A DNA stretch of 64,000 nt from Guillardia theta CCMP2712 (Eukaryota; Protista; Cryptophyta). The stretch spans positions 419,877-483,876 of the forward strand of contig NW_005434666.1 in the NCBI RefSeq assembly GCF_000315625.1. Direction: 5' to 3'. Below are positions 1,331 to 36,783 of this stretch, piece after piece (within the stretch, counting starts at the first letter, position 1; every line of letters begins with the position of its first letter). The notes beneath the pieces are model-generated. The model was not told the DNA's origin. It saw only the letters and a list, made by a program, of their open reading frames with translations, and did no database searches. Made by a program: the position numbers and the translations under genes.

Positions 1331-4300
1331 TCATGCAAGCCCGATAAACGGCTGCTCCATCCCTGATGCTCTCCCCTGCCTTCCTTCATCCTCCTCCTCC
1401 ATGGCTCTCATCCCTTGTTCGATCATCTGCACTTCCTGGAAGACCAGCTCCGCGTAGACCTCCGGCAGCTCGGGGGCTGTCGGGTGAGGGATAGTCTGCA
1501 TCTCTACAAGCCCGTCAGTTGCTCCCTCACATCAAACCTCCTCCTCCTCCTCCTCCTCACCCACGGCTCCGCGTAGGTGGACCTGTACGGCTGTTAGTTG
1601 TGCCTCCTCCCTCTCTAACTTCTGCTACTCCTCCCCACTCCCTCACCCGCTCGCCCGTCGAGACTTCTTTTCGCCAGTACCTGATCGTTTGTCAACCCTA
1701 AGGTTGTATAGATAGGCAAGGGAGGAGCAAGGGAGGAAGAGCCAGAGCCAGAGCCAGAGGATAGGGGAAGGAGGGAGGAGAAAGACTGACCTGAGAAGCC
1801 AAAAGGAAGCGAAGGAGCAGATAAAGATAGCGACTCCTACGATTATCTCGACTATCAAGGGCACAGGAAGTTTATTTGACGGGTCCTGAGCCAATGTGAA
1901 GAGTTGAAGGATCGAGAGACGGGCGAGGAAGTGGATAAGGGAGGAAGAGGCAAGCAATCGAGAAGGATAATCAAGAGATGGGAAAAGGGGAAGACACAAC
2001 GAGGATGAGAAGCAATCGGAACAGGACAAGGAGCGGCAAGACAAGAACGATGAAGACTAGGACAAGGAGGAGAAGTAGAAGGCTGGCAACGAGAAAGAGA
2101 AGGAGAAAAATTGAAACAAAGAGAAAACTTGAAGTGTTGTTGGTGAGGAGCAGGAGACCGGAGTCGTAGTCACGACGGGAGTTCCTGTCTCCTCCGGGAA
2201 GACGATCTTCAAGAACGGGCTGACAAGAAGCCGGACAGGAGGAAAGCCCTGTGAACGCGGGGAGACGGTCAGTGAGGGAGAGGGAGAGGGAGAGGGAGAG
2301 GGAGAGGGAGAGGGAGAGGGAGAGGGAGAGGGAGAGGGAGAGAGAGAGAGGGAGAGGGAGAGGTGGACCTGCTGTGCCAGAGCATCGTTAATCCTTTGAA
2401 GAGAAAGAAGTGGGATCAAGTCTAGGCGCTCCTTGCCCAAGAGAACAGCAACGACGACCTGCGTCCTGTCGTTGTTGGCCGGGTCTGTGCTCGGGTCCAG
2501 AGAGCGACGAGGAGAGGAGGGGGAAGGGGAAAACGCTGTGGTGGCGATGGAAGAGACAGACGAGCTCTCCAGCAGCCTGCTGGCTGTCAGAAGAGAGGAG
2601 GACGGCAAGGATGAGAAACTCACAGGATCTTGTCGAGGGGCCAGGATGCGACTTGAGAGATAGCGGAGCGGAAGGTGAGAGAAGAATTCAGGAATTTGGA
2701 GAGGGGCATTTCCATCGAGACTACGAAGACGATTGTGTTCTCCTGCAGCTGCTGCATCGCTGAGCCCAAGCAGGAGGACACATCCTCCTGACAAGCATGA
2801 CAGTCACCTTCGCTCTGGTCCCTGCAGTCCGTCCGGAACATCCCCTCCGGACAGTCGTCGCACTTCCTGCACTCTCCCTCGCTCGCTCCCCCACACCCGT
2901 CCCGGTGCTCTCCTGGAGGACAGCTGGCGCATGCCTGGCAAGTAGCACCTGCCTTGCAGGAGGAGGCAAACTGCCCAGCTGGGCAGGGGGAGCAATTGAG
3001 AGGCCGCCGATCGAGCTCGACGAGGATGCTGCAGTTGGAGGCACCAACAGAAGCCACTGCGAGGACCCACGCTCCTGTGCCGGGGAGGGTCACGCTGGAG
3101 AAAGTGAGAAGGGGAGAGGAGGAGAGGAGCTCGATCTTAGCACTGAAGTCGTTCGGGGACGGCACCTTGTCGCGATGCAGGAAGACCCGACACACCTGGC
3201 GGCCTTGCGGAGGGTTGACGGTGAGGAACCAGTCTCTCTGCTGACTTGTCGTGTTCCACCAGGAGAAGGATCGGGAAGTTTGAAGGACGGAGATTTGGTT
3301 GACTCCCTCCTGCAGCAGAGGTATCCGGCCGCTGCAGTCCGAACCCAAGTAGGGGAAGTCGCAAACGCAGATCCCCTTCCGACAATCCCCATGACCGTGG
3401 CAGCCAGACGGGCAGGAGGGATAAGGACAGGGAGAAACCTCAGTCAAGTTCCCAGAGACAACAAGCGAGAAGTTCTGCCGCGGAGTCCGCATCCTGAGGG
3501 CAGAGACCATCACCTTGTAGGTAGCCGACACTTGAGGGGAGGAGACGACAACCTGTCAAACACAACAAACAGTGAGCTCGCCTCCTCCCCTTTCCACCTC
3601 CAAGCTATCTCTTCCATTGCTCTCACTCCACCTCCCGTTGCAACTCGCATTCCTCCTACGTCACCTTCTCGTTGTTGTTCACGTCGTCTTGCGCCCGAAG
3701 GACGTCTCCGCCCTCTTCCTTCCACATGATTCCATTCCCGCACATCTCCTCTCCGCCATGTCGCACAATTAGGTCGAGATCGCTCACGAGGAGGTTCTCA
3801 GCTGATGGCGGGTCTGTCCACACCAGCGTCACAGTAAGCGGCTCGTTGGCTCCCTTGACAAAGAAGCATCGAATCGCCACTCCTCCTCGGTCGATGGTGA
3901 CGTCATCAAGGAGGAAGAGCGAGGGTCCATCCCGCGCTCGGTACATGCTGAAGACGTTGACTGCCCCGTGTCCCTGACGACAGTTGGGAGGACAGGCGCT
4001 GAGAGCTTGCGCGTCATCTTGGAAGTCTTGTGCTGCATGAAGGAGGATGGCCTTGACGAGTGAAGCGCTCCCCGTAAACTTCTCATCTTTGACTTGCTGT
4101 CGTATCAGGGCAGCGGTGGCAGAAACGAGCGCAGCTGACAGATGCGCTCCATCGTCCTCCACGACCGCGTCTTTCCCGCACTCGAACGATGTCAAATCGG
4201 CGTCTGACTCCGCTGCCTCGATGGAGATGCCAGGAGCAAAGACTTCTGGCTTGATCTGCCCGTCCCCCACAGGGCCAGTGGAAGAGAACGGAGCGATCTG

Positions 4301-30540: not shown

Positions 30541-31204
30541 CCTTGGACTAATGAGGATCAAGTCCTCGAGGTCCTCAGTGGCAATCTTCTTGGAATGACA
30601 CGATCCTTCAAGTCAAAGGAGCTCGATGTGCATCTCCTGCTCCTATCAAGACTAGAGCCTCCCCCGCTCTACTGTCCTTCCCCTCGCCATCCGCATTCTT
30701 CAACTGCAAGTCGGAGACCTGGCTCTGCTGTGAGCCTGCCTCAGGATCATGCCGGGCCTCCGGCCGGGCCCGGCCGGCCCAGGGCAACTTGGACTGATAA
30801 GGACCAGAAGAGAAGAACCGTTCCGAGATTAAGATTTACAGGAGATTCATTGATAGAGGACAATCTGTGCTCAAAATTCATAGCAATGGAAAAACAAAAG
30901 TGGAACTATGGTACACTTCTAAAGATGTTTTTTTTTTGCCTGCACTGCTTCCATTCTAGGATGCACCTACCCAAATCCCCTCCAAGGATTCCAAGAATGG
31001 AGGCAGTTGTGCATGTGCAACAAATAATATAAAGCTGCGCAAAAGAATTTCTACCTATATTTCTACCAAGACAGTTATTAAAAAAGTTTTAAAATATTTT
31101 TCCTGTTCCCAATATATTTATACCCTGTTGTACAACATATCATCAATGTTTGGTCCTTTGTACCAATCAGTATATATTTATAATATTTTATATGTGAATT
31201 TATC

Positions 31205-32531
31205 ATGGCGACGTTCAAGATGAGGAATGCCTGCGCCTTTCCCTCCTCCTCCTCCCTCCTCCTCCTCCTTCTCCTCCTCCTTACGTCATCAACATTTATC
31301 GAGTGCTCTCAAGCACCTGCTAGACATCTAAAGCACTTGAACACAGGCAACGTTTTAAAGCGAAGAAGTTCATTTGCAGTGTTGGACAGCTATGATCACG
31401 ACGATGATCACGACGATGATCACGACGATGATCACGACGATGACGATGATGACATAGATCACGATCATGGAGGAACAGGAGGGTCGGATGATGACGATGT
31501 ACCAGCTTCACCAGCTCCATCACCAGCTCCATCACCAGCTCCATCACCAGCACCCACTCCAGCTTCACCGGCACCCACTCCAGCTTCGCCAGCACCTACT
31601 CCAGCTTCGCCAGCACCTACTCCAGCTTCGCCAGCACCCACTCCAGCTTCGCCAGCACCCACTCCAGCTTCGCCAGCTCCAACGCCAGCAACGCCAGCTC
31701 CCTCGCCAACAACCTCAACTCCAGGTCCTAATCAAATAAGCACACAAAGCACAAGTTCGAACGTAGCGAACCTAGCTGTTTCTTTGCCGCTGACTTTGAA
31801 CGACTTCAATTCTGATGCTCAATCAAACTTCAAAAAAGCCGTCGCTGCATCGGCTGGCACATCCATCTCCTCTGTGATCATAACTGGCATCACCGTCCTG
31901 ACAACACGTCGCCGATTGTTATCTGCATCGATTCTTGTCCATTTCAGCATTTTAGCAAAGGATGCGCAGCAGGCGACAGACATCAAAAATAGTTTTTCTG
32001 TGGACTCGTTGAATAAGGAGCTCATCAAGAATGGATTGCCTCAGGCTTCGATACAGATTGTGAAGCCAAGTACAGGAGCATCCGACAACACATACTTGGT
32101 GAGCCGCCTTACATGTCTATTTTGAACTCTGATATAGAACAGTACGTCGGAATTGGTGGAGGGATACTCTTTGCTGGAATTATGGGAATGGGTCTATGGA
32201 GAAGACTGAGGAAGAATCGGGTAGAGCTTTTCTTGTATTGCTATTCCCTCTCATCTTGGGCGAGTTTCCTGGCCTTGCTCTTATTGTAACTTTGCAGGTA
32301 AAGACTCTTGCAAGAGAAGTGAGACCCGAGACCTTCGGCTCAGGAATTTGTGAGTGGCAAATTACTGTGAACGAAAGTTCATCAGAAACTGACTTGAGTT
32401 GCCATGGTTTTCCAGTGGTCATTCCCACAGATGGAAAGTTGCCTACTCCCAGCGCCCCTCCCTTGACTGTTCTGCATGGAGAATATGATCCTGAAGACAG
32501 AGACGAGTATTTCGCCAATTATTTTCCTTAA
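31205..32531 (+). CDS. Mucin-like type-I membrane protein 1: signal peptide, (DHDD)n, (PASPAPT)n, SEA-like RRRLL domain, TM, PSAP tail
   Basis: ORF 31205-32125, then intron to TM YVGIGGGILFAGIMGMGLWRR; last exon LVIPTDGKLPTPSAPPL...EYFANYFP* (32531). Confidence 0.85.
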
Positions 32532-32984
32532 GAGTGATGCGGCCAAGTAACTATGATGGCTTGGGCCGCCACTGATGTCCCCGCCAGCCCAATCATGTTG
32601 CGGGTTCAAGTAGTGAGTAGAGAATGTCGTTCCGTTTCCGTACTGTGAATGTATATTATCATATAGTAGTGTAGACCTGCCAGTAGATTTACTTGTCCCT
32701 CTCACCACCAGAGCACAAATCCTTCAAGTGATACGATTGCAAGATGCCGTCTGTAGTTTTAAATGCTATTAGAAATTGTACCTGAGTTTTATTTTAAAAA
32801 GAGTCTATTACATTATTATGTTTTATCTCTATCAGTGACAGTCACAGGTACCCTGCTTCCTACCCATCGATGACCCCCCAACTTCTCTACATTCGGACCC
32901 CACCAATCGAGAGGTATACCTACCTACTGTTTGCAGGTGTCGTAGACCCCACCACAGCGTGGTTCACCCCGCCAGGAAGACTGG

Positions 32985-34665
32985 ATGCAGATGGGCGCTA
33001 AGGCAGGGCGTCAACGCCGCTTGAGTATCCTCATCCTCGCCGTGATTGCCATCACGAACAGCTCCTACCTTGTTGGTCAGGCCTCGGCTTCTCTCACCTT
33101 GCGTTTGCCACATAGATCACACTTTTCTCCTCCATTTTCAGTCCGCGACTCCGGTAAGAACGCCTGAGCCGTCTTGATCGTTTGATGCAAAATCTCACCG
33201 TTGGTGCAAATTCAGACTCCGAGGAGTCAGAGGAAGACGAGGCGTCAGAGGCAGAGTCTACATACAGTACTTCCCCTGCTGATACCGCTGTTGCCACGAC
33301 CCCTCTTCCCCAAGGTTTTTAAAGTACCTGTTTCGGCGTTGTTTGACAGAGTTGTTTTAGAATCGGATAATGCTGACACGAACCATGAGCAACAAAACAA
33401 TGTTGTTCAGTCGTCTAAACCAGCTGAAGGGAGATCAACCACTTCTCAGATGACGTCAAGCACTTCCCCAATGCTACAACACACAGCTTCGATTCAGGCT
33501 GAAAGCACTCGAGGAAAGCTAGATGAGGTCGGTACCAGTACACCGTCACCATCCTCGCAAGAACCAACAACAGGTGTGTGGTGAAGAAGTGCGGATTAAC
33601 CACAGAGAAGTTGAATCTTTGACGATCCTTTGTCAGATTCAGTGCCGGATAACGGAGACAAGCAAGACGGGATCGATTCCTCTACTTCTGTAGGGTCAAG
33701 CCAGCCCATGGGAGGTGATAACAATAAATTACCAGGCAGCACATCAAGCCCAGGTGCACTCGTTTCTTAATTGTTCGATAGTTTCTGATAGGAGGCTTGA
33801 CAGATGGCGCAGGGAAGAAGCAAACTCAAGCACCTTCAAATCTCATTTCCACCACGCCAGTGATGCAACAGAATCAAGTTTACTTGTATGATGTAAAGCT
33901 GGAAGTGACGCTGCCGATGTCTGCCCAACAATTTGGAGCTCAAGAAAGGAGAGCATTCATGGATGCAGTTGCTCGGACTGCTAAAGTTCAACCATCGCAG
34001 GTTTCGATTACAAATGTGATCTCGAATCGACGAGGGTCTAGAAAGCTGCTGGCAACAAATTCACTTACCATTGAATGCACTATCAAAGTGTCAGAACCGA
34101 ATGCAGTCACACGGATAACAAAGGACATGACAATCGCTTCACTGAACCAAGAGCTAGCCCGTGGTGGTTTACCTCAGTCCTCGTCAGTTGCCGTCGTTTC
34201 CAAGAGCTCGACCTCGAACGGGTCCTCAGATACTTACTTGCTGGTTATTCAGAATTTATACAATGTTGCCTATCTGACTCTTTTTGACAGATCGGATGCT
34301 GCATTGGGGGAGGATTCTCCCTGATTTTGTTTTGTTTGATCACCAGGAAAATGCAAAGATGCACGAAGGTTTGTCTTGTCTCGTTTTCGTTTTTGTGAAA
34401 AATTCTGATGATTGGGATTCAAGGCACGTAGAGACACTTTCACGTACTTAGGTACGATCTATAGCTATGTATTTCTTGTTCGTCTCCTCACAGGTACGCA
34501 GGTACACCCGACCCTCCACCTACGGCTCCGCCAATGCCACTCAGCAATGAATCCACCGTCGATAGCATCGAAGAGGAAGAAGACATTCCACCTCCCCCCC
34601 CACTACCATCAAATGATTCTCATCTCTGCTTCGTGCAAGATGGCAAACAGAAACATTATTACTAG
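32985..34665 (+). CDS. Mucin-like type-I membrane protein 2: signal peptide, S/T-rich stalk, SEA-like RKLL domain, TM, PTAP tail
   Basis: Signal LSILILAVIAITNSS; VKLEVTLPMSAQQFGAQERRAFMDAVARTA...SRKLLATNSLTIE...LNQELARGGLP; TM IGCCIGGGFSLILFCLI; tail DPPPTAPPMP...KHYY* (TAG 34663-34665). Confidence 0.82.
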
Positions 34666-34806
34666 GCATGTTTGGAACGTGCTCTGGTAGTCGGATAAGC
34701 CTGTATTTTTAATCCCGGCTCATTGTACGGTCCCGCCGCCGGTCACTCTGAGCCGGTCGGCCTGGCGGGCCCCGCTCCGCACATATTTCGATCATCACGA
34801 ACTTGT

Positions 34807-34845
34807 AAGTAGTAGTAGCAGTAGTAGTAGTAGTAGTAGTAGTAG
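34807..34845. repeat. (AGT)n microsatellite
   Basis: agtagtagtagcagtagtagtagt... between convergent paralogs 2 and 3. Confidence 0.85.
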
Positions 34846-35138
34846 AGCTAGAACGGCCAATGGTAAGCTCTTTGGATAGCAACCCTCTTTGATTCAGTTT
34901 GAAATAAATTCTCCTCCCCGAAGTTGTAAATAAAGTATAGTGTTACTTGAGACTCGAAGGAGACAACAGTACCGCGCAGGAATTCATACAGTGCACTAGT
35001 TTGTTCCAGAGTATAGGTTCCAGAGTATAGTTTGTGTACGTACAAAAGTGACGAGCAAGATAAAAATATGTGACAACTTTTGGATAACAAAAGGAATTTC
35101 ATTAAGAAAAATAGACTAGACATACTACATGGAGTTCC

Positions 35139-36372
35139 TCATGGGCAAACAGTTGCGAGAGGAATTTGCGGTTGTCCATATCGCTGGAACACAGGCGGAG
35201 GAGGAGGAGGTGCTGTCGGTTGAGGGAATTTCGAATCCAAAGTCACCACTGCAGCAGTGTAAGACGGTGTTTTAAAGTCATTTTGATCTTACAAGAGGCA
35301 TGGCCGTTACTCGAGATGTGCACATCATCGTTTGACTTCCGCTGCCGAAGGTAATCAGACGAAATCTTACATGCGATCAGTATTTTTCTCACCTTCTTGC
35401 GCGAGAGCATGCAAATAACACAAATCATAAAGCCGAGCAAGACTACTCCACCGGCAATAATGCCAATCTGGCAACATATCAGTCCTTGGATATTCGCAGC
35501 GCTTTAGAAATACCAATATTGGTGTTGTAATTGTGAAAGGCGATGAAGATGAGTTTGGGTTCGAAACTGATGGAAGATTCTGCAGAATCAGCTCTTCATT
35601 GAGCTTCTTCAAGGGGAAATTCGTTGCAATCTCCTGTTGGAGAGAAGAATTTTGAAATTGAATCGAGAAATCTACCAAGCTAGATGTGCTGCTGCGTCTT
35701 GCCAACATGGCACGTACAGAGGTGATATTCACGTCAGACACTGAGGTGCCAGTTGACAAGGCAACAGCCTGTTTGAAGCTCATCCTCTTTGCTGCACCAA
35801 AGTTCTGGGGTGGAATCTGCATGAGCACCGCAAACTCGAGCACATCAGCTGAGACTTTTTTCGGTTGCAACGGAGTACTGGATGTTTGACTTGAACTGGA
35901 CGAGGTAGTTGATGGGCTCGGAGAGTTGGATTGAGTTGCTGGAGAGCCAGTCGAAGCGGAAGATGTGGGAGAGGAAGGCGAGTAAGAGGGTGAGGTAGGA
36001 GCTGGAGCTGGAGCTGGAGGAGCTGGAGCAGGTGAAGGAGGAGCTGGAGCAGGTGCGGGAGGAGAGGAAGAATGGTCGCCATGATCACTGTCACTGGAAA
36101 CATGCGATGAGTCGTTGGATTCGTAACTCTCTCCGCTGTCTCTGAGTCTAGTCACTCGTGCGATCTTCTTGCGTTCCAAGCTACCTGCTCAACAGATTCA
36201 ACAAAGTGTTGAAGTTGTGAATAACAATCTCACCGTTGAAAATGAGGTTTCCTAATCTCCGCTGCTTTGTTAACCCAAGCGTCCGGTCTGCTGGTTGACA
36301 TACACCCAGAAGGAAATGAAGAAGGATCATGACCATTGCAACTTCTGATCTGACTGTCAAAGATTGTGCCAT
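35139..36372 (-). CDS. Mucin-like type-I membrane protein 3: signal peptide, D/H/S-rich segment, (PA)n/S-T stalk, SEA-like domain, TM, PTAP tail
   Basis: Signal VAMVMILLHFLLGVC; LEFAVLMQIPPQNFGAAKRMSFKQAVALSTGTSVSDVNITSVRAMLARRSSTSSLVDFSI...LNEELILQNLP; TM IGIIAGGVVLLGFMICVICML; tail LVTLDSKFPQPTAPPPPP...TVCP* (35139-35141). Confidence 0.85.
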
Positions 36373-36783
36373 GTTTGCTCACGTTTTGCCTTAGGTTTTC
36401 CTGATCTTGAGTTCGGCGGGGGGGGGGGGGGGGGGACTGAGGGGGCAACTCGGAATCGATGGGACAGGTGTGGGAGCGCCGTAGAGTAAGCCGGGGCCCC
36501 TACTTGAAGCTTAGACGGTCACCGAAGGAGGTAGAGGAGGGAGGAGGGGAGGGAGGGAGTATGAGGATGGGAGGGCGCTTCAACGGCGTGTGATTATATC
36601 GGGTCTTCTGCGAGCCCTGGTCACCTACCGTACTGGGGATGTCACGGCGGCCGCCCCCCAGTAGCAGGGGACAAAGGCTTAAGGGGGTACTTTGAAGTGA
36701 ATGTAACCGGTACTATGATCAGTTTCATGTTGTATATGGGGGTGGGGTGAGGGTTGAGATAAGGGTGTACGTTACTACCAAAT

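Follow-up and report, generated by a model that had tools for sequence, protein, structure and literature searches.

Three expressed, paralogous type-I membrane proteins of Guillardia theta share a widespread membrane-adjacent domain and a candidate ESCRT-I-binding tail motif

Results

Three neighbouring genes encode expressed type-I membrane proteins

The stretch of Guillardia theta CCMP2712 DNA analysed here (64,000 nucleotides; contig NW_005434666.1 of assembly GCF_000315625.1, positions 419,877 to 483,876 of the forward strand), which we call the window and from whose first nucleotide coordinates are counted unless another contig is named, carries a cluster of three genes between 31205 and 36372. 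A preliminary description, made from the letters alone, had read these as paralogous surface proteins with an RRxL/SEA-like module, a transmembrane (TM) helix and a tail bearing a P(S/T)AP motif of the type bound by the Vps23 subunit of the endosomal sorting complex required for transport I (ESCRT-I). We find that the three genes are transcribed and spliced as type-I membrane protein genes, that the domain they share belongs to a large protist family, and that their tails conserve a PxP(S/T)APP motif, a candidate ligand of ESCRT-I. The gene models and TM helices are as follows.

31205..32531, + strand: gene 1; exons 31205-32098, 32143-32220, 32298-32349 and 32416-32531; 379 aa (transcript joints, open frame)
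32143..32199, + strand: gene 1 TM helix, from the translation; its exon begins at joint 32098/32143, and a basic stretch, RRLRKNR, follows the helix
32985..34665, + strand: gene 2; exons 32985-33153, 33216-33314, 33361-33573, 33637-33753, 33804-34243, 34291-34368, 34424-34451 and 34502-34665; 435 aa (seven joints in three runs)
34291..34341, + strand: gene 2 TM helix (translation, open frame)
35139..36372, - strand: gene 3; exons 36372-36234, 36184-35514, 35467-35393, 35341-35293 and 35248-35139; 347 aa (four joints, one with 15 raw reads)
35405..35467, - strand: gene 3 TM helix (translation, open frame)

Transcript contigs of three runs, together with one raw RNA run (X22), were mapped onto 31100-36500. 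This recovered 14 joints, each of them present in contigs of all three runs and bordered by GT..AG (CT..AC for the minus-strand gene 3), so that every intron of genes 1-3 is confirmed by transcripts from three studies (contigs of runs X1, X2 and X5), and the exon joins are those proposed in the preliminary description. Raw X22 reads cross two of the joints, 15 at 35248/35293 and 2, a number under the listing threshold of the read table, at 32349/32416; the raw reads are 3'-biased, and their first mates fall on the plus strand for genes 1 and 2 and on the minus strand for gene 3, in agreement with the orientations of the genes. Exons were joined by a local script to check their frames, and database searches were run on single exons. 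For the last intron of gene 2, transcripts use the acceptor AG at 34500-34501 and leave a rival AG at 34493 unused, which places the PTAP of this gene in frame. Database sequences tell the same story for gene 1: a spliced orthologue, P0002 (JGI), is continuous across all three gene 1 joints, and P0001, the Hanusia phi copy of this gene, still contains two of the introns. The closest database protein to gene 1 is likewise from Hanusia phi, with 79% identity over the domain.

The common descent of the three genes, as previously proposed, is borne out by the 33-38% pairwise identity and 24 invariant columns of their aligned domains and by the positions of their introns. In each gene the intron directly upstream of the TM exon, already noted in the preliminary description, is in phase 0 (32098|32143, 34243|34291 and 35514|35467), and the last intron is in phase 1, where it interrupts a Leu codon in gene 1 and in gene 3. 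Since most other Guillardia paralogues encode the TM helix and the domain in a single exon, the intron before the TM helix is best seen as a derived feature shared by genes 1-3. The type-I architecture holds as well and is illustrated by gene 1, in which a signal-peptide-like N-terminus is followed by an Asp/His-rich block, a (PAPT/PASP)n stalk, the domain, the TM helix and the tail; signal peptides of all three proteins were judged by N-terminal hydrophobic runs alone. We regard this architecture, and the expression of the three genes, as highly probable.

Several further observations concern these transcripts and their surroundings. At 31648-34922, contigs of runs X1 and X2 lead from gene 1 across a 450-nt spacer into gene 2 and are spliced throughout; the two genes therefore overlap where they face each other (3' end of gene 1, 5' end of gene 2) or are read through, a single transcript not being demonstrable from a contig. 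In contigs of two runs an extra C follows 32966 and another follows 32971, at a distance of 14-19 nt before the start codon of gene 2, which could be an assembly error in a C run or a strain difference. A run of about 20 G lies at 36417-36440, just upstream of the gene 3 start codon, and the transcript contigs stop there. Residues 60-90 or so of gene 1 (31385-31470), ahead of the Pro-rich stalk, consist of Asp/His repeats in which DHDDD occurs several times, a composition that could bind divalent metal ions.

A widespread protist domain next to the membrane

The domain shared by the three proteins was located as follows.

31754..32095, + strand: gene 1 domain; profile match at 3e-36, RRLL loop at 31910-31921
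33878..34243, + strand: gene 2 domain; profile match at E 1.2e-28, RKLL at 34040-34051
35523..35852, - strand: gene 3 domain; profile match, with a shortened loop, ARRSS, that is without RRxL

Pfam scans of the gene 1-3 exons returned no usable match to this domain of about 100 aa, and none above threshold was returned for 108 aligned family members; the plant ALE2_N model gave a weak sequence match in 2 of the 108 (E 0.007), below the Pfam threshold. A profile of the three sequences, searched against 1.84 billion representative proteins, by contrast matched 891 of these (clusters) at E<=1e-3 and 157 at E<=1e-10, and in 88 of 149 top matches a hydrophobic helix lies within a few residues after the domain. 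Mucin-like proteins are among the members. The domain occurs singly behind a low-complexity stalk, or in several copies in proteins of 1,400-6,000 aa with Ephrin_rec_like Cys-rich repeats; other members end in kinase- or RING-like tails, judged by eye from the sequences, and yet others are subtilases. Named members come from the cryptophytes Baffinella, Teleaulax and Hanusia and are all annotated as hypothetical; atlas clusters indicate haptophytes, diatoms and green algae, with very few members carrying a taxon label. The Guillardia genome itself holds at least 31 matches.

In a tree of the domain, genes 1 and 3 group together (support 86/91), with more than 2 substitutions per site between their domains, compared with 0.28 for gene 1 and the orthologue in Hanusia. 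The domain is a widespread and undescribed protist membrane-adjacent module, a generic juxtamembrane pedestal of a large family of surface proteins.

The domain is modelled as a ferredoxin-like sandwich

An AlphaFold2 model built on the 108-sequence alignment (mean predicted local distance difference test score, pLDDT, 82; predicted template modelling score, pTM, 0.71) has a beta-alpha-beta-beta-alpha-beta topology, with a strand at residues 2-9, a helix at 18-32, a strand at 39-47, a loop at 48-56, a strand at 57-65, helices at 69-90 and a short final strand; it is an alpha/beta sandwich within the 100-120 aa or so and the position beside the membrane that characterise SEA domains. Foldseek found no match to the model in the PDB at E<=1e-3. 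With an exhaustive structural aligner, for which a Z below 8 may reflect a common arrangement, the best match was to residues 1216-1326 of CELSR1, immediately beyond its cadherin repeat 9 (Z 9.5 over 101 aligned residues, root-mean-square deviation 3.4), followed by two chains of the dystrophin-glycoprotein complex (dystroglycan; Z 8.5 and 7.4), PCDH15 MAD12 (Z 7.5-7.6), CDH23 MAD28 (Z 7.2-7.5), the IA-2 and phogrin ectodomains (Z 6.7-6.9) and the Notch2 HD (Z 5.5). We take the CELSR1 segment to be the membrane-adjacent domain (MAD) of that protein. An atlas structure search added plant ALE2_N (TM-score 0.67-0.68), FAT4 and KIAA0319L. If the model is right, the domain probably folds as a ferredoxin-like sandwich and falls into one structural class with SEA-like and membrane-adjacent domains.

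The resemblance to animal cadherin MADs (PCDH15 MAD12, CDH23 MAD28 and the CELSR1 region) extends to size, about 100 aa, to the beta-alpha-beta-beta-alpha-beta order and to the place directly before the TM helix of type-I proteins. There is, however, no sequence similarity (5-18% identity), the cadherin domains are without the RRLL loop, and the protist family, unlike them, is joined to many other ectodomain types. Plant ALE2_N (PF23180), a fold match whose sequence similarity stays below the Pfam threshold, is likewise an ectodomain ahead of the TM helix, in receptor-like kinases. SEA domains (PF01390) and SEA-like modules (dystroglycan, the IA-2 ectodomain, the Notch HD) share the juxtamembrane alpha/beta sandwich and an upstream mucin-like stalk, and SEA domains are cut at the beta2-beta3 turn, where the protist domain has its conserved motif; in contrast to SEA, the protist domain has no sequence match and no GSVVV, and any cut would need a protease, as furin does the cutting at Notch S1.

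A conserved RRLL loop as a candidate processing site

The loop between strands 2 and 3 contains the most conserved columns of the 108-member alignment, with Arg at position 1 in 102 of the 108 sequences, Arg (69), His (9) or Met (6) at position 2, Leu at positions 3 (92) and 4 (89), and Ala at position 5 (68). This profile agrees position by position with the consensus of site-1 protease (S1P), R-(R/K/H)-L-(A/L/S/T/F), of which RRLL is the Lassa GP-C site (PMC2685025), and the match of RRLL in gene 1 and RKLL in gene 2 had been rightly pointed out in the preliminary description. That description had given an RRxL module to all three genes, which is correct for genes 1 and 2 but not for gene 3, whose loop, ARRSS, has lost two residues. 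The loop also matches the processing motifs RRLL and RKLL of plant pro-pectin-methylesterases (pro-PMEs), which are handled by subtilases, and a dibasic kexin site is disfavoured because position 2 varies where kexin would need an invariant Arg.

In about half of the Guillardia paralogues R-L-L is missing and the loop is shorter by four residues, gene 3 being intermediate, and several others have a longer loop in which LRR, a spacer and R[RS]LLA follow one another. Because the loop gains and loses residues among these paralogues, the fold does not need the RRLL motif; being dispensable for the fold and placed on a variable hairpin, RRLL is easier to understand as a functional site than as part of the core. 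We consider it, on sequence grounds, a hallmark of the domain and a credible candidate processing site, and that it is indeed cleaved is possible, if somewhat doubtful. Substrates of S1P (SKI-1/S1P, plant SBT6.1), such as Lassa GP-C and plant pro-PMEs, present R-(R/K/H)-L-L to the lumen of the secretory pathway, as is predicted here; the putative sites of genes 1 and 2 differ from these in lying inside a folded domain, and in that searches of the Guillardia genome with two S1P accessory-domain models identified no S1P orthologue.

Diatom proteins, among them the RXL-processed biosilica proteins, offered a further comparison. RXL sites have been reported in diatom type-I silicalemma proteins, and the SAPs among diatom proteins have a conserved cytoplasmic domain of 28 aa just after the TM helix and a Ser-rich lumenal region (PMC5647440). 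Measured against this description, genes 1-3 were rejected as SAPs, since their conserved block is lumenal and their tails have only the PTAP motif in common.

A PxP(S/T)APP motif marks the tails of a small subfamily

In each of the three proteins a P(S/T)AP tetrapeptide lies in the translated frame after the TM helix and its basic residues, from which the cytosolic side of the tail was assigned, and transcripts confirm that frame for all three of the motifs that the preliminary description had listed.

32448..32459, + strand: gene 1 PSAP, in the last exon; context LPTPSAPPL, with PSPSAPPL in the orthologue P0002
34519..34530, + strand: gene 2 PTAP; context PPPPTAPPM, with PPPTAPPM in the orthologue P0005
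35208..35219, - strand: gene 3 PTAP; context FPQPTAPPPPPP / FPQPTAPPP, in the transcribed frame

The tails are 55-70 aa long with 8-13 prolines each, and composition-preserving shuffles of the tails of genes 1, 2 and 3 yield P[ST]AP in 0.5%, 1.1% and 1.8% of trials; the earlier observation that the motif is kept while the stalks diverge stands for these genes. Six-frame translation of the 64-kb window contains P[ST]AP 11 times, and 4 of these occurrences fall within family tails. Five Guillardia genes carry the motif, namely genes 1-3 and two subtilase-type genes described below, and two close orthologues (P0002 and P0005, one of them labelled Hanusia phi) keep it. Given the distance of more than 2 substitutions per site between the domains of genes 1 and 3, the motif has outlasted much more divergence than have the flanks in the tails.

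A genome-wide count went against the idea that a TM helix followed by P[ST]AP generally accompanies the domain, since a possible PSAP lies downstream in no more than one of 20 other Guillardia loci of the family, and there in an unverified frame. An excess over chance is seen in genes 1-3 by shuffling and in the wider family, where 4 of 72 tails have the motif against 0.87 expected by shuffling (P about 0.01), but it is not a property of the family as a whole. To judge from these sequences, PxP(S/T)APP is not family-wide and is the mark of a small subfamily in Guillardia and Hanusia, with subtilase-type proteins among its members.

A candidate reader is at hand, as the preliminary description had supposed. 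The Guillardia genome encodes one Vps23 UEV domain, scoring 108.7 bits against PF05743 and aligning to the human TSG101 UEV at E 3e-21. Compared with the list of residues through which the TSG101 UEV contacts PTAP (PMC11670305), 8 of 12 are identical (Y63, Y68, N69, P71, T92, M95, P139 and V141), two are conservatively altered (F142Y and R144K) and two differ (I70C and S143A). The pocket for the second proline thus appears largely intact, which speaks for competence and not for binding as such. PxP(S/T)APP is a credible candidate ESCRT-I ligand, and we propose binding of the tails by Vps23 tentatively, with the chances leaning against it. The P(S/T)AP late domains of HIV-1 p6, Ebola VP40, Hrs and ARRDC1 have the same core and following Pro in a disordered cytosolic segment; genes 1-3 differ from the proteins that bear these in that the motif sits on the transmembrane protein itself and not on an adaptor. 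We know of no ESCRT-I ligand that has been studied in this cryptophyte, and a literature search found nothing relevant on RRLL combined with a SEA domain or on Guillardia theta and ESCRT.

Other tails and variants were noted in passing. At 32463, 3 of 17 raw X22 reads have G for T, which puts Val in place of the Leu directly after PSAPP in gene 1 and probably reflects variation between strains or alleles. The Guillardia paralogues L001, L002 and L007 share [VI]xPR[LI]S[VI][VI][QH] shortly after the TM helix, and L003 and L006 have (I/L)PLD(G/N) followed by an acidic run; from their sequences the tails of the family look like interchangeable modules for sorting or adaptor functions. Two metagenomic members, P0072 and P0083, which form a separate clade (support 99/100), have tails with PSAPPY(Y/H) repeats, where PSAP and a PPxY-like motif share residues in a manner resembling the overlapping late domains of Ebola VP40.

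Subtilase-type members of the family

One of the two subtilase-type genes that carry the motif lies near the start of the window.

1340..2733, - strand: C-terminal part of a subtilase-type gene (predicted splicing), with a divergent, intron-split domain, a TM helix at about 1790-1855 and PTAP at 1472-1483 (IPHPTAPEL)

Only the first domain exon of this gene (about 2620-2733) matches the profile, at positions 4-41 and E 0.002, and an open reading frame upstream of the domain has a Pfam S8 match. The second gene, on contig 29 (700500-704900, minus strand; L022), has a domain spread over three exons, with breaks at profile positions 42/43 and 94/95, followed by a TM helix and MPIPTAPPL. A further subtilase on contig 26 (13800-18900, minus strand; L027) has a C-terminal domain and TM helix, with no P[ST]AP in the stretch inspected. 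Membrane-anchored subtilases with a domain that is typified, across the family, by a putative subtilase-type motif could process themselves or one another. A long (CT)n / (CTCTCC)n microsatellite occupies 2200-2400 (minus strand), in an apparent intron within the domain-coding part of the window gene.

Discussion

The explanation that we favour, with confidence that falls somewhat short of even once the firm architecture is weighed against two mechanistic steps, is that genes 1-3 encode paralogous, expressed type-I glycoproteins of the plasma membrane or endomembranes, in which acidic or Pro/Ser/Thr-rich stalks, probably glycosylated, precede the domain, the TM helix and the tail. In genes 1 and 2, and not in gene 3, R-(R/K/H)-L-L on the beta2-beta3 hairpin would be the site of a secretory-pathway endoprotease of S1P-like or diatom-RXL-like specificity, at the same topological spot as the SEA cut, after which the stalk piece might be released or held non-covalently. 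PxP(S/T)APP would be a short linear motif under selection, with the UEV of Vps23 as its best candidate reader, and binding may route the protein or its membrane stub to multivesicular bodies or, less likely, into outward-budding vesicles, with no need for ubiquitin. Shedding, multivesicular-body sorting and ectosome sorting are plausible hypotheses.

A number of points weigh against this explanation. Its support is at the level of sequence, transcript and model. PTAP is usually found on adaptors or viral Gag and rarely on cargo itself; the conservation of the motif among orthologues amounts to two sequences from one very close relative lineage, and a tail search for more distant orthologues returned the query alone. 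Proline-rich tails of this kind could equally be read by SH3, WW, EVH1 or profilin. The domain tree does not fix the position of gene 2 and does not unite genes 1-3 in one clade. Fold matches at Z 7-9.5 barely exceed the usual background of the aligner, and intracellular ferredoxin-like domains, among them those of Nup54, the PheRS beta subunit and a mitoribosomal protein of trypanosomes, match equally well (Z 7-8.8). An exon-wise six-frame search of the genome with the S1P accessory-domain models MBTP1_N and MBTPS1_4th gave no match, and the six Guillardia subtilase loci, of at least 20, that were compared with the PDB are all KP-43/SubHal-like and none S1P-like. Finally, the conserved R51 could pair structurally with the acidic residue at position 61.

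Several of these points feed a purely structural or adhesive role, which we take to be a serious minority possibility. Genes 1-3 would then encode mucin- or extensin-like proteins that anchor the surface coat (periplast) to the plasma membrane, with RRLL as an uncut structural or ligand loop and the PxPTAPP tail as one among several polyproline ligands of cortical SH3, WW, EVH1 or profilin-type proteins and not of ESCRT-I. Stalks rich in Pro/Ser/Thr and Asp/His, the further polyproline in the tails (PPPPPLP in gene 2, PPPPPP in gene 3) and the failure to find S1P in the genome searches all suit such anchors, as do best fold neighbours that are mechanical membrane-adjacent domains of cadherins and quite different conserved tail motifs in other Guillardia paralogues, which make the tails look like exchangeable adaptor-binding pieces. 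Against this, conservation in five paralogues and two orthologues goes beyond prolines to the exact P-(S/T)-A-P, Ala included, and the RRLL profile equals a protease consensus at each position in a loop that the fold can dispense with. The first of these observations bears also on the view that P[ST]AP is a functionless by-product of proline-rich composition and shared descent. Tails with 8-13 prolines each, and occurrences that, in paralogues, are not independent, speak for it, but the low shuffle probabilities, the rarity of the motif in the other family loci (at most 1 of 20) and the persistence of a PxP[ST]AP core amid differing flanks, across deep paralogues and subtilase-type genes on two contigs, make this view improbable.

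Two further alternatives concern what might happen at the loop. Regulated intramembrane proteolysis, in which RRLL is cut on the lumenal side and a second cut, within the membrane, then releases the tail for signalling, as for S1P/S2P substrates or Notch, would make use of the RRLL/RKLL consensus and of the likeness to the Notch2 HD (Z 5.5). It is very improbable in view of tails that are short, of low complexity and without a recognisable signalling or DNA-binding domain, of genome searches that found no S1P, and of a cut that would fall about 45 residues before the end of the folded domain, away from the membrane. A true SEA domain with autoproteolysis is close to refuted. The fold class, the conserved motif in the same hairpin and a weak language-model similarity (0.78) to a SEA cluster recall SEA, but there is no match to Pfam SEA (PF01390) at E<=1 in genes 1-3 or the 108 members, R-R-L-L-A stands at the beta2-beta3 turn in place of G-S-[VI]-V-V, and the top 50 fold matches include no classical SEA chain. 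Of the SEA-like module of the preliminary description there remains an alpha/beta juxtamembrane module of the SEA-like/MAD class, which is not a member of the SEA family.

In its strongest form the favoured explanation would make the domain the protist counterpart of SEA and the Notch HD, cut by a subtilase at RRLL with the halves held together non-covalently, while the membrane stub of the PTAP subfamily recruits ESCRT-I directly and drives ubiquitin-independent multivesicular-body sorting or ectosome release. We think it unlikely that all of this holds; if it did, PTAP-UEV recognition would be an ancient usage, outside viruses and beyond plants, fungi and animals.

The gene models and the conservation of the motif are firm, and both can be used for annotation even if cleavage and ESCRT-I binding alike should fail. 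With hundreds of clusters, the domain is worth naming, and once it is named and tested many surface proteins of algae would be annotated together. The PxP(S/T)APP tails, for their part, provide a concrete candidate for an endogenous ESCRT-I ligand in this lineage.

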